Both the position numbers and the translations under genes were made by a program. Of a stretch of DNA of 64,000 nucleotides, positions 1 to 59,600 are shown piece after piece. Position 1 is the stretch's first letter, and the number at the start of each line of letters is the position of its first letter. The notes beneath the pieces were generated by a model. The model was not told the DNA's origin and did no database searches. It worked only from the letters and a program-made list of their open reading frames with translations. Source of the DNA: Pavona decussata (Eukaryota); contig CDRNST010000436.1 in the NCBI GenBank assembly GCA_977016875.1, positions 1,612,001-1,676,000 on the forward strand. Direction: 5' to 3'.

Positions 1-1964
1 TTGGTGTCCGCCTCTCTTCGATAGGTATCAATCTGACGCTGTGCCTCAGCGAGCTGCCCTTTGAGGCGGTCAATCTCATCATTAAGTTTATTGACAACAT
101 CAGCATGCGATTTAGCATCTTCTTCAAGCACTGCTTTCTTACTCAATGCATCACGAAGCTCAGCGTCTGCGCGCGCGAGATTCTGTCTCAGGTTCATAAC
201 CTGCTCTTCAAAATCCCTCTTTTCTTTGTCGGCGGCATCCAGAGCAGTTTCCAGGTCAGAGTTATTCTTCTGTGCGTCTATCAAATCTCGCTCAGCGTTG
301 TCCTTGTCTTCCTGAACCTGCTTAAGGTCTTCTTCCAGCTCCGCCAGTTTCTTGTTTCCATCCATCAGCTCGTCGTTCAGTTCATTCTTTTCATCTTCAA
401 GCATGTTGTTCTGAAGGTTCAGTTGTTGCACATCCTGTTCTTTCTCGTGAATATCTCCCTCAAGGCGCCGGATTGTATCTCTCAAGTCATCGATGATCTT
501 CTGTTTCCTTGCATTGTCGTTCTTCAACTTCTCGAGGTTGCGTTGTGCTTCTGCCAATTGTGTCTGCATTGCAGCGATCTCTTTTTTAAGCTGAGCAGTC
601 TTGTCCTTTTCAGCATCCAAATCTGCCCTCAGCTGAGCCTTCGCTTTGTTGGCTGCAACGAGCTGTGCTTCTAAATTCGAGTTCTTCGCTCTTAAAGCGT
701 CAATCTCTCGCTCGAGTCCATCACGTGAATTTTCACTCCTTTCCAGAGCAAGCCGCAGCTCCGAGATTTTCTTCTCCAGTGGCGCGATTCGTAACTTGAG
801 GTCGTCTCTCTCTTTGGAAGTGATGGAGTTGCGTGATTCCAGCTCGTTGACCTTGCTCTGGTGGCCTCCTACCCTGGATCGTAGTCCGTCAACCTCACTC
901 AAGTTAGAATCATGAGAGGATTGAAGCTGTACGTACTTGGTGTTGACGCTCTCGAACTCGCTCTCCAAATCATGTATACGCGTACGGCAACGCACCAATT
1001 CATTCTCCAGTTCTCTCACACGGCTGGTCATCTTACTATTCTGGCTCTCAATCGTAGCAATTCTGCTGTTTGAAATTGCAAGCTCACGTTGGAGATCTTC
1101 TTTGGTGCTTCTAAGACTGTCGATCTGGGCCTCCTGTTCAGCTTTTCGCTTTTCCGAGGAGCGGAGCTCGTTCTCGAGGTCTTTGACCTGTTTCGCCTCC
1201 ACCTCTACACGCATCGCACTCTGAGACAGGTCCTGCTGAAGCTGCTCAACTTGATCTTCTAGTGCGCCGTTCTTCTGCTCCAGGTTGCGGATCTGTCTGT
1301 TCTTTCCCTCCGCCTCATCTCGGAGTCTGTCAGCCACACGCTTGTTGTTCACAGCTTCAGCCTGTGCACCTTGCAATGCCTCTTTGCTCTTCTTCAAATC
1401 ATCTCGTAGCCTCTCCAGCTGCCTTTTAAGATCCTCACGCTGTTTCTGAGAATTCTGCAGCTGCACCTCAAACTTCTTAACCTTGAGATCGCACTCCTTC
1501 TTCGTGGCGTCCAGGTCTCGTACCGCTCGATCGTAATCGGCCTGCATCCGGGCCAGCTTTGCTTGCAGATTGTGAATTTCCTCTTGTAGCCCTTCCTTTT
1601 CGTCGGCGGAGCTCTTCAGCGTGGCTTCATACTCCGAGATCTGCGAGCTGAAGAATTCCTCCTCCATAGGAGCAGACTCCTGAACAGTTGTAACCGACTG
1701 ACTCACGACCATCTCGGACTTGAGGGTCTCCAGCTCCCGCTGTAGTGCCACCTTGTCAGCCTTGAGTGACAGGATGATGTTGTTCTTGGAGGACAGCTCA
1801 CGTTGAAGCGCTTCAAACTCTGTCTCGCGCATCAGAAGACGCTTTTTTATGGAGACAAGCTCTTCATTAAGCCTGTTCCTGTCGCTCCTGCTCTCCTGAA
1901 GCTGTTCCTCTGTCTGTCGTTTCTGGCGCTTTAAGTTCTCGATTTCCAGTCTAAGCTGTTGGAC
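1..1964 (-). CDS. Gene A, large coding exon (3' partial, runs off window): long coiled-coil protein, paralogue of gene B
   Basis: Minus-strand acceptor cttcgttttctttaag|GTC at 1965/1964. Reading frame VQQLRLEIENLKRQKRQTEEQL...IDRLKGQLAEAQRQIDTYRREADT, E/K/L/Q/R heptad-rich; both ends translated in the same frame. Presumably absent from the ORF track because it has no stop in the window. Colinear with the gene B exon. Confidence 0.9.
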
Positions 1965-2555
1965 CTTAAAGAAAACGAAGAAATAATGATAGTGAACTTG
2001 ATCAGGCTTAATTGACAAAACATCTAGGATTAGAAACCCTTTTTCCAGCACAGTGAGACAGTAATAACCTTCCAGATTATTCAAGCTAAATTGCTAACGT
2101 GTAGAGGATTTAGCACGTATATTGACGCTGTGGTCGACGGATAGACACACAGAGGTTGCGCTTCCTCCGCGGAAAAGTAGATCTGGTAGCTAATGACAGA
2201 CAGCCCGACTTTTCGTGACGTTGACTCAAATCCAGTCCCTACGAATCAGTCCATACGTTCCGCTTAATCTGGCGCTAATCTTGGTCTGGCATGGGCACCA
2301 GTTGATTGCATTTTGACTCCGCACAAAATTCCAACGCGCAATTACAGATTTCTGGTGGGCGCACGCCTTTTCGTGAGAAAAGCAATTACGCCGAGCCCTT
2401 AAAGGAAATGCATTTGAAGTACCTTTTCAGATGGCGTTTTGAGTGCTTGAAATTTTACCTGCTTTACCGATATTAAAGACAAGCTTGGAAGGGGAACGGG
2501 TGGTGGGATAACTAGGCTATATAGGTATACATTTGGACGTATACCTCCACGCTAG

Positions 2556-56600: not shown

Positions 56601-59600
56601 AAAAAGACCGAGGATTTAGAGGATAAGATCGAAGTATTAAACTTGGAACTCCAGCGGGACGAAAAGGACATTGACGAGTTGAAGGAAGTAAAGAACAGGC
56701 TTGAAGACGAGGTCGCCGACCTACAAGTTAAACTCGCGGAAAAACAAGATGTCATCAACTTCTCGCCCGTTAATGTTGCGCAAGTGGACACCCAGTATGC
56801 AGCCGCACCAGGGTTTGATTTTGGAGCAGATCCAGACGCTCTAAGAGACCTTGAAGACGAAAACATGGACCTCAAAGAGAAAATAAAAAGAGGAGAAATG
56901 GAATACGATGTTCTGCGCCAGCAACTAAACGACTACAAGAACAAGCTGGGAGACTCGGAGGGGAAGAATCACCGCCTCGAGACAAACCTTAAAGATGCAG
57001 AAAATCGTATCAAGGAGCTAGAGAAGAAGTTGCCCGACGCAATAGATGAGCTAAATCTGATGAATGATAAGTATCGTTCCGCGGAGCGTGAACTCGAACT
57101 CTTAAAGGACGAGTTGCAAGATGCACAGAGCAAGTTAAGTACTGCCGAGGCACAGGAAGTTGCTGGATTGGCCAAACTAAAGTCTCTAAAGCAGCAACTT
57201 GAAGCTGCACAGAAGGACCTACTAGACAAGAATGATGAGGTTATCGAAAAACAACGTAAAATTAACGAGCTGTATGCCATTTTGGAGAGTGGGGATAAGG
57301 ACTCTGATCGCTTGAAGCATGTTATCGAGGAGCTGAGAGAAGATGTTGACAACAAAGACAGAGAGAACAACAAGCTGCAGAAAGAGCTACGCCTTACACA
57401 AGACAACGTTGCCAAACTGCAAGCAGCACTGGAAGAAATGGAAGCGAAGTTGCACGATACGGAACATGAGCATGAGGAATACAAAATGAAGGCCGATGGA
57501 CTGAACGTAGAGATTGAAATGCGAGACCGCGCTCTGGAAGAAGCTCAAAGAGAAGTTGATGACTCACGGGACAAACTAAAGGCTGCAAAGAAAGAAATGG
57601 ATACCCTTCGTAGTCAACTCAAGGAAGCTATCGTAGGCTTAAAGGCTGCCAATGACGAAAAGAAGATTCTTGAAGCAAGAATTGCAGAGCTTCAGAGGAT
57701 CATTGAGCAGCTGAGAAAAGAATTGACAGCCAAAAACAGTGCGGTTGCTACTAAATCTGGGGTTAGCAACGCTTACTTAGATGACCTTAGAAACAAGCTC
57801 GCGGAATACCGACAAAAATACCAGGAAGTCAGCAACGAAAAGATGAGACTTGAGCTTGAACTTCGGGATAAAGATGTCAAGATTTCTCAAGTGTCTAGTC
57901 CATCTGATGCACTACGTGAAGAACGAGACCGCCTCAAAGACGAAGTTATCAGTTTGCAAGCCGCCCTTAAAGAAATTAAGAGGAACAACCAGAAAGCTCA
58001 GAGGGAAGTCGAAGAACTCCAACGTGGTTTAGTGTCCAAAGACAGCGAAATTCTGCGCTTGGAAGATAAAATCCGTAAACTGGAGGACGAGAAAGAGAAA
58101 ATGAAAAAGGACCACGCCAACCTAGAAAAGAGGAACTCCGACTTAAAGGTCGAACACGAGAAGCTCAAGTACGAGAAACAGAAAGTAGAAAACGAACTTT
58201 CTCTAATGAAGAAGAAACTCCAGGCCCTGCAAAACCAGCTGAACGCGGTGGATATTCCTAAACAGAACCAAGACGTTGTGAGTAAGAAGAAATATCAAGA
58301 ATTGGAGGCAATTTGCCAAGACGCACTTCGTGAGAAGGAGAAGGCTAAAAGTGACGCGACCGCTTACCGCACAAAGATGGCGAGACTAGAAGCCGAGATG
58401 AACGAGCAGAAGAGAGAGAAGGATGCTTTGGAGGATGAAGTGATTCGCCTGAAAAATATCGAAGCTGAACTCAAAAACAAGCTCCAGAATGCGCGAGACA
58501 GACACAAGGAAGACAAAGACAAGAATCTAGAATGGCGTAAAAATAATTTTGCTCCTTTGGAACAGGAACTACAGAGAGCCAAAGGGCAAATCAAGAAGCT
58601 CGAGAAGACAAATTCAGGCCAGGAAAAAGAAATCGAGGATTTGAAAGACGAACTTGCTGATCGTGAAAAACGAATTGCCGAGTTGGAGGATGAACTTGAA
58701 AACCAGGATGACACCGATGCTGGACCCCTTGACTCAGTTAACATCGATATTAGAGGAGACTCGCAAGCACTTCAAAACGCCCTGGATGAAAAGGCAGATG
58801 CCTTGAAAGAAGTTCAAAAGCTTAAAAGCAAACTCTGGACTCTAGAACACGACATGGATATCCTCAAGACAAAAGAGGCTCAACAAGAAAAGATGGTAAA
58901 TGAGGTGAACAACATGAATGATAAACTGAAAGAAGAGCTGCGTCAGCTAAAGAAAGGAAACTGGGATCAACAAGGATCGCAAAGCAAGCTTCAACAAGAG
59001 ATCAATGATTTAACACGCCAAGTTAACGCACTGAAAGAGGACAAGATAGACCTTGAGAAAGACATCGAGGAACTCCGTGATGAGCTCAACGACGTGAAAA
59101 CCGAAAATCGAAAACTGATGATGGAGAACAAAGAGCTCAAGATTGATCTGCAGCAACTAGAAGTCAAACTACACGAGTTGGAGATGGGCCACAAACTAGC
59201 CAGAGACGACAACGAAAAGATACGAAATGATTTGTTGAAGGCAGAGAACGAGAATGCTGATTTAAGAGACAACCTGAACAAACAAAATGACATCATTTCG
59301 GTGCAGACGGTTGCTGAAGTGGAGAATGCCCCCCCGATGTTTTTTGACGATGATATGGATGGAATAAAGAGAGATAAAGACAAGCTGCAAATCGAGCTGG
59401 ATGCGGCGGAGGATCAGGTTAAACTGCTACAAAACGAGCTTGAAGACATGCAAAGCAAGAACGATAGACTTCAGGATGAATTGACTGAGGCCAGACGGAG
59501 ACTTAAAGAAGATGAGGCAGACATCAAAAAGCTGGACACCGAGGTAGAAAATCTTCATCATGAGATCCAGCTGGCAAACCAAAACAACGACGAGTTACAA

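Follow-up and report, generated by a model that had tools for sequence, protein, structure and literature searches.

Long coiled coils that give rise to banded assemblies have been described in several systems. Myosin II and paramyosin are long parallel coiled coils whose periodic charges favor set axial staggers and so lead to banded filaments; the charge-stagger analysis of myosin rods was reportedly carried out by McLachlan and Karn. The myosin II tail also folds at hinges into about three equal parts. Ciliary rootlets are striated with a period of tens of nanometres, and the lamin rod is about 350 residues long. Rootletin (CROCC) is described as a coiled coil of ∼2000 residues that self-assembles into cross-striated fibres (PMC2173070). 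Here, a 64,000-nucleotide stretch of the coral Pavona decussata (contig CDRNST010000436.1; G000:C436:1612001-1676000), referred to below as the window, was analyzed. It carries three giant coiled-coil genes (A, B and C), nearly without introns, whose rods are broken by a recurrent Val-rich, Pro- and Phe-containing linker motif. At a probability of roughly 0.4, this motif marks conserved non-helical joints in a giant two-stranded coiled-coil family of stony corals and sea anemones whose members assemble with a stagger.

Like myosin II and paramyosin, the coral rods carry a charge pattern that favors a defined axial stagger. In those rods, however, the periodicities are 28 and 98 residues, in unbroken helices that have single skip residues but lack Pro-containing linkers, whereas the coral stagger is ∼357 residues, is marked by linkers of ∼18-25 residues with a motif of their own, and is found in proteins with no motor domain in the exons read. 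The unusual feature, for a long coiled-coil rod with periodic assembly information, is that the 357-residue period is marked by a dedicated linker motif. Rootletin resembles the coral rods as proposed here in being a long coiled coil that forms cross-striated fibres, but the matches examined place the coral family in stony corals and a sea anemone alone, its gene C ends in a CaaX-type box, and no Pfam Rootletin match at an expectation value (E) of up to 0.01 was present among the matches listed for the A, B and C exons (for A, the best 25 of 31 families). Golgins such as giantin (GOLGB1) are likewise long rods with non-helical breaks acting as hinges, and a coral paralogue, P0015, bears the automatic NCBI name 'golgin subfamily B member 1-like', which rests on coiled-coil similarity. 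No Pfam match to a golgin anchoring or GRIP-type domain was found in the parts read; within the same listed matches, the A, B and C exons hit generic coiled-coil families only. Gene B ends in a Ser/Thr/Pro-rich tail and gene C in CQQS. As for lamins and other intermediate filaments, the coral module of ∼350-385 residues is near the length of the lamin rod, and gene C has a C-terminal CaaX-type box. The family differs from them in its many modules in tandem and in the lack of a Pfam match to any tail domain; the Pfam Filament matches were partial and sub-threshold, at 35.1 (A), 22.7 (B) and 17.4 (C3, the sequence on which gene C residues are numbered below) bits against a cut-off of 40.

The eight peptides listed in the initial annotation were all present and translated as written: one in A (A1), two in B (B1 and B2) and five in C (Ca to Ce; Table 1). 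Its coordinates needed amendment in that copy A lies on the minus strand, where 1650-1709 translates as VVSQSVTTVQESAPMEEEFF, and that the frame of Cc starts at 55731. The pattern it had proposed, a Val-rich stretch followed by (A/S)P and then by Phe in an acidic context, was upheld: it is ordered, exceeds shuffled sequences, is non-helical in structure models and is conserved in orthologues. When 23 copies from the window, the paralogues and the orthologues were aligned, Val was nearly invariant at position -10 from the anchor Pro and Val also stood at -7; (E/Q)(S/A)(A/S)-P(-P)-x-x-F followed, with a nearly invariant Phe, and then acidic residues. The consensus is V-x-x-V ... (S/A)(A/S)-P(P)-x-x-F-acidic. 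Prolines are scarce in the rods (∼20 clusters per 2300 residues of C), so each Pro cluster marks a break. Further copies lie outside the window, at residue 1989 of A (DIVVQSVGPSLQSAPDMF), as GVDMFPD in the next exon of A, and at residues 1486 and 2331 of a paralogue, E. A second type of break, a single Pro in L-(R/K)-P-(E/Q)-(L/V), was seen at 54951-54953, 55203-55205 and 55476-55478 (C3 residues 452, 536 and 627). These sites are 84-97 residues apart and divide the segment from Cb to Cc into four parts; all nine sequences (C3 and eight orthologues) retain P536 and P627, and similar sites occur at residue 438 of A and residues 306, 1565 and 2295 of E.

Motif significance was assessed with a profile made from the five C copies only and scored on A, B and E. 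The six best matches outside C were all breaks in these three proteins, four of them being the motif copies B2, A3, B1 and E2. Whole-protein shuffles of A, B and E never attained the true top score (0/200), and shuffles confined to a linker attained the true score of an A, B or E copy in 0-7 of 500 trials. In the reverse test, in which an A/B/E profile was scored on the C copies, four copies gave 1-11 of 500 shuffles, and Cc was not significant (139/500). The initial annotation had set beforehand that a motif no better than composition-matched linkers should be abandoned; in this comparison most copies were significant, with Cc excepted in the reverse test. Over the whole 602-Mb genome, the motif profile detected this family only, and the sole non-family match (G000:C63:635907-635990) was weak (E=0.39) and lay in a 70-residue open frame. 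A general docking motif used elsewhere in the genome was therefore rejected as a candidate.

Conservation was followed in eight coral orthologues and one sea-anemone orthologue of gene C, in which the position of the joints is kept and their sequence is partly kept. Ca reads YNITVVQSDVSLQSAPPEVSAF in the coral orthologues, Cc VANVSVVQSAPPQSF, Cd VNVSSVETTYAAAPGFEFG (with APGF(E/D)FG kept in 7/8) and Ce IQVQAVTTVETVESAPPMMFDDD; the AP..F part of Cb is lost in most of them and in the anemone. Over 1134 residues, the anemone protein (Actinostola sp., P0045) shares 34% identity with C3; it carries Ca-, Cc- and Cd-type copies (Cc as VNVSFTESAPMMF), and a second open frame at the same locus holds a Ce-type copy, IQVATVETVESELPFDFDD. 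The two frames overlap in different frames at L022:14701-14738, where the P0045 model stops, reflecting either an assembly frameshift or a missed short intron; the model starts inside the N-terminal motif (SIDMEMF). In P0022, an orthologue fragment of gene B (86% identical), B2 reads IAVQSVSTVEASAPDFF. At Ca, RNA contigs of other P. decussata individuals have ESAPPGF or ETAPPGF, and at Cc they have SAPPVSF or SAPTVSF; the motif pattern is thus kept despite allelic variation within the species.

The structure of the joints was modelled for two copies, Ce and Cd, by AlphaFold with orthologue alignments. The Ce model consists of a helix (2-98), a loop of 18 residues (99-116) and a second helix (117-220), and the Cd model of a helix (2-92), a loop of 25 residues (93-117) and a helix (118-220); most loop residues in both had a predicted local distance difference test (pLDDT) score below 50. 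The helix restarts with acidic residues right after the Phe in Ce and with D-P-D-A-L in Cd. Under general helix-capping rules, such a restart after the motif would fit a helix N-cap. Together with the alignments, the models support the breaks as real non-helical linkers with a shared, ordered pattern.

Spacings were counted from the anchor Pro; the exons of gene C were analyzed one by one, and only distances were taken across the splice. The spacings of ∼380, 365 and 350 residues given by the initial annotation for Ca to Cd were measured as 382, 366 and 350 on the spliced frame, followed by 364 to a degenerate joint at residue 1435, 116 to another at residue 1554 and 358 to Ce. The chance that five random sites would give first three spacings this regular is ∼0.003. 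The eight coral orthologues give 381-385, 362-366, 350-352, 311-361 (356-361 in 7/8), 102-119 and 351-362, with Cc to Cd exactly 350 in 7/8, and the anemone gives 372, 372 and 349, with Cd to Ce at ∼837 compared with 838 in the window. In the paralogues, 355 residues separate sites 2001 and 2356 of B, 348 separate 1138 and 1486 of E, and ∼360 separate residue 1989 of A from the site in its next exon. The distance between the 1435 and 1554 joints, 116-119 residues in nearly all coral orthologues, is about one third of a module.

The charge complementarity of two parallel copies of each rod was scored at shifts of 30-890 residues, smoothed over 7, and z values were calculated against shuffles of 7-residue blocks. 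A charge pattern favoring an axial stagger, as in a self-assembling coiled-coil fibre, was found: a shift of 353-360 came first among ∼220 local minima, being the most attractive of all, in C3 and four of its coral orthologues, in the anemone protein and in A. It came second in B and E and second to third among the P0015 paralogues, compared with ranks of 4 to 103 in ten long coiled coils from outside the family. Combined over six diverged members, z was -6.7 at a lag of 357 (51 heptads, ∼53 nm), and this trough survived both the masking of all Pro-containing linkers and a null of 28-residue blocks. The combined profile also shows attraction at a lag near 188 and repulsion near 42, 139, 432 and 713, which hint at a shorter underlying charge period.

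The striated fibre suggested by the initial annotation thereby gained computational support, the charge stagger of 353-360 being equal to the linker spacing; the agreement suggests a banded fibre and does not prove one. At each joint, a long helix ends, often with Pro, a stretch rich in beta-branched residues follows, and a new helix begins at (S/A)-A-P(-P)-x-x-F and its acidic residues. Molecules may assemble side by side with a stagger of ∼53 nm, which would bring most joints of neighboring molecules into register, and at the registered joints the Val-rich strands and the Phe/acidic restarts could contact each other to give a banded fibre. A bolder form is doubtful, namely that the ∼357-residue modules and their joints are a built-in 53-nm ruler and that the family co-assembles into a cross-striated cytoskeletal fibre specific to anemones and stony corals, with the Val-rich strands of neighboring molecules zipped at the bands and the fibre tied to a membrane by the CaaX end of C.

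The equal length of the segments between flexible loops could also be read in terms of fold-back elbows, at which the rod would zig-zag and pack its ∼53-nm segments antiparallel in a compact bundle, similar to a myosin II tail folded in thirds. The antiparallel charge scores at the joints are mildly favorable (percentiles 2-27 in most cases), but the minimum was taken within +/-8 residues, which biases these percentiles downward, and in every protein the global minimum lies away from the joints, none of which is the optimal centre for folding back. The predicted template modelling score (pTM) of 0.52 for the Cd model could reflect a hairpin; however, single-chain AlphaFold tends to fold any two amphipathic helices into one. 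With the parallel stagger signal much stronger (rank 1), folding back at the joints appears quite unlikely.

Several observations weigh against staggered assembly through the joints. The charge z values of single proteins are moderate (-2.7 to -4.6), the family members share ancestry and are not independent, and the charge test was run once the spacing was already known. C1554 and Ce miss the register of the other five joints by ∼116-150 residues, and a constant heptad phase across the joints was looked for and not found. Paralogue D and its orthologues are without the motif yet show a weaker charge minimum near lag 355-357 (rank 7-10). Whole linker segments are also less conserved than the rod average (70%), falling at the 0.2-21.5 percentile of rod windows.

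The initial annotation regarded the motif as the main evidence linking C to A and B, which was not supported: C is homologous to B, E and A, colinearly and over its full length, and some motif copies are therefore one inherited site. The colinear alignments of C3 span 1750-2400 residues, with expectation values of 3e-139 (paralogue E), 1e-126 (B) and 8e-82 (A). In these alignments, Ce corresponds to B2, to E2 and to the GVDMFPD site in the next exon of A; C3 residue 1554 to B residue 2001 and A residue 1989; and Cd to E residue 1486. A three-sequence alignment had placed A residue 1989 as the equivalent of B2, an assignment rejected because the long colinear alignment puts it on B 2001/C3 1554. 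Further giant paralogues were found: D (G000:C436:1678062-1687742), E (G000:C436:3381601-3390927; 3109 residues, 1.7 Mb away) and, on another contig, F (G000:C50:1914993-1929282). D lies just beyond the window on the minus strand, so that A, B, C and D form one cluster. A D-like protein (P0002) and a C orthologue (P0010) of another coral may likewise sit on one contig, since the longest contig recorded for each measures 395,404 bp. The motif is lost in D, in F and in the orthologues of D. A 1474-residue coiled coil, P0118 (contigs L020 and L021, two public runs), is weakly similar to the family (E about 1e-12) and has the motif's second half three times in good form (ASAPAFDFSED, ESAPEGDF and ESAPDPF).

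A recent tandem duplication of a 360-residue unit was not supported, since BLASTP of C against itself gave nothing significant. With hhalign, motif-anchored modules scored a mean of 36.9 compared with 35.6 and 36.7 for out-of-register controls, so that there is no inter-module homology above controls; an ancient modular origin of the ∼360-residue unit is possible, because shifted secondary BLAST alignments place joints on joints. Orthologues outside Hexacorallia were also considered and rejected, as the few top non-family profile matches looked up were coiled coils of a generic kind (from a plant NET protein, from lamprey and Giardia, and from a 'chromosome segregation ATPase'). Many profile matches start where the motif ends. 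No paper on these genes was found in searches for coral golgin B-like or Nematostella giant coiled-coil proteins; the papers found on striated rootlets in anthozoans dealt with other proteins, and one of them, on the Nematostella apical organ, concerned unrelated CCDC genes. The database names of the family members are automatic only.

This shared ancestry bears on a simpler explanation, in which the joints are plain inherited linkers that combine common descent with generic helix capping (first-turn Pro, acidic residues and a hydrophobic staple), and in which the spacing is kept since long coiled coils tolerate few indels. It would account for several copies being the same ancestral site, for the lower conservation of linkers than of rods, for the decay of Cb and of the 1435 and 1554 sites, for the absence of the motif from D and F, and for the hhalign result. 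However, Ca, Cc, Cd and Ce are different sites and not alleles of one, yet they share the pattern, which survives from coral to sea anemone at an overall identity of 34%. Moreover, within-species alleles vary but keep or restore SAPP..F, the single-Pro kinks in the same family indicate that a long ordered motif is needless for breaking a helix, and the charge stagger equals the spacing. Plain linkers are thus judged an improbable account of the joints.

Homer-type EVH1 domains bind PPxxF, and this sequence occurs in most Ce and Cc orthologues. The joints might accordingly be docking sites for a partner that clamps both chains, either a proline-recognition domain on (A)PPxxF or an LC8/DYNLL dimer on Val-x-Val-Gln-Thr/Ser. 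The conserved residues exceed what breaking a helix requires, and the joints resemble the sites of multivalent LC8 clients, which are short strand-forming motifs in disordered stretches, often beside coiled coils and in several copies (PMC6607443); the Ce and Cd loops are predicted to be disordered stretches of this kind. The LC8 anchor has Gln at position 0 between two mid-sized residues (Thr, Val or Ile, at -1 and +1) and a strand-breaking Pro, Asp or Glu at +2, a Pro before it is listed as unfavorable, and weak motifs beside coiled coils, as in myosin Va, can still bind (PMC6607443). On this basis, the joints may be putative weak, bivalent LC8 sites beside coiled coils.

The LC8 resemblance noted in the initial annotation nevertheless proved weak. 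The anchor [TVI]-Q-[TV] was found in three of the eight window copies (VQT in Cb and Ce, VQV in B1), a minority, and is not conserved between species: the Ce orthologues retain IQV or VQA, but the VEVQT of Cb becomes VEVSY or VDVTY and the Cd anchor becomes VSSV or VVNV. B2 and Ca in the window contain no Gln. Ser prevails at +1, and the residue at +2 is frequently Val or Ala and not Pro, Asp or Glu (Val in Ce, Ser in Cb and Leu in B1); Cb also has the unfavorable Pro, at -4. PPxxF is not general, since the A, B and E copies carry a single Pro, and the restriction of the motif profile to one family is unusual for a general docking motif. Docking of such a partner therefore seems unlikely.

RNA contigs from four runs were placed on window positions 52300-58299, a segment that covers Ca to Cd and ends before Ce. 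Their match there begins at 52399, and ahead of this point they carry 30 letters that match window positions 51894-51923, and the eight orthologue proteins pass from ...DLQNK directly into (T/I)I(P/L)ELKQ with no residues between. The contigs and the orthologue proteins thus join the exons across the gap at 52.1 kb, and neither assembly gap cuts a motif. The only joint in the RNA contigs within 52300-58299 is a GT..AG intron (52922-53616), without any indel, so that gene C is transcribed and spliced and Ca to Cd belong to its coding part. The possibility that the motifs are unspliced in-frame introns (Val codons begin with GT, and Phe and Pro codons are pyrimidine-rich) was rejected for Ca to Cd, as the RNA contigs of the four runs retain these copies.

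Gene C is closest to hypothetical proteins from Desmophyllum pertusum (76% identical) and Oculina patagonica (69%). In its first exon, TKTVVKDEE may be a remnant of the N-terminal motif site. Its CaaX-type end, CQQS (61158-61172), reads CKQN, CQQN or CQQS in coral orthologues and CKQS in the Actinostola orthologue (L022:19159-19170); this conservation of Cys at -4 from corals to sea anemone suggests a real lipid-anchor signal. The full exon of gene A (G000:C436:1607356-1614093) is a 2246-residue open frame that extends past the window. Gene B encodes a rod of ∼3360 residues followed by the Ser/Thr/Pro-rich tail, and this non-helical tail (28480-28560) contains EPSITVVSTDGVNRTPPMSP and SQTVISQVEGSASP, which are like the Val-rich-then-Pro half of the rod motif.

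Table 1. Genes, motif copies, degenerate joints and assembly gaps in the window (window positions).
Feature	Position	Strand	Sequence and remarks
Gene A, start of giant exon	3..2093	-	Open frame and paralogue search
Motif copy A1	1629..1730	-	EMVVSQSVTTVQESAPMEEEFF; N-terminal site, position as B1; genome-wide profile E=0.0075
Gene B	18091..29208	+	Single 3706-residue open frame
Motif copy B1	18445..18546	+	SQVSQVQVLESSPDDMEMSF; profile E=2.7e-4
Degenerate joint, B residue 2001	24043..24120	+	KYVDVQTVQSDKREKKPTD; Val-rich with Pro, without AP..F; 355 residues before B2
Motif copy B2	25096..25197	+	TIAVERVSTVEAAAPDMF; profile E=2.8e-6; aligned to Ce of P0008, E=3e-25
Assembly gap	47573..48026		Upstream of gene C start codon, outside identified coding exons
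Gene C coding exon 1	48148..48504	+	Begins MSQRRSSARSLPYEPRTKTVVKDEE; ATG at 48148; 3' end approximate
Gene C coding exon 2	51790..51926	+	...LEVVINDLQNK; 5' end approximate, 3' end from RNA contigs
Assembly gap	52091..52299		Within intron between gene C exons 2 and 3
Gene C coding exon 3, bears Ca	52402..52921	+	RNA contigs of four runs and junction letters
Motif copy Ca	52759..52860	+	YNVNVVEIEPILESPPPGFSFGD; profile E=3.4e-7
Gene C giant last exon	53617..61172	+	∼2517 residues; CQQS, then stop codon
Motif copy Cb	54600..54701	+	KPVEVQTSYSAPTIDF; least conserved copy
Motif copy Cc	55698..55799	+	AVANVSIVQSALPVSF
Motif copy Cd	56748..56849	+	SPVNVAQVDTQYAAAPGFDFG; aligns with E residue 1486
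Degenerate joint, C3 residue 1435	57855..57932	+	DVKISQVSSPSDAL; 364 residues past Cd
Degenerate joint, C3 residue 1554	58215..58292	+	LNAVDIPKQNQDVVS; 358 residues before Ce
Motif copy Ce	59271..59372	+	DIISVQTVAEVENAPPMFFDDD; position as B2 and E2

Annotations usually treat a long coiled coil as a rod without features. In this family, two independent features of the sequence, the linker spacing and the charge stagger, agree on an axial period of ∼53 nm, and both are kept between stony corals and the sea anemone. For a family with automatic names only, this gives a testable prediction, that of ∼53 nm banding with the joints at the bands. If the banding prediction fails, the motif is still of use as a marker by which these giant, fast-evolving genes can be aligned and annotated; if it holds, it would offer a handle for finding the anthozoan cell structure that is built by these abundant-looking transcripts.

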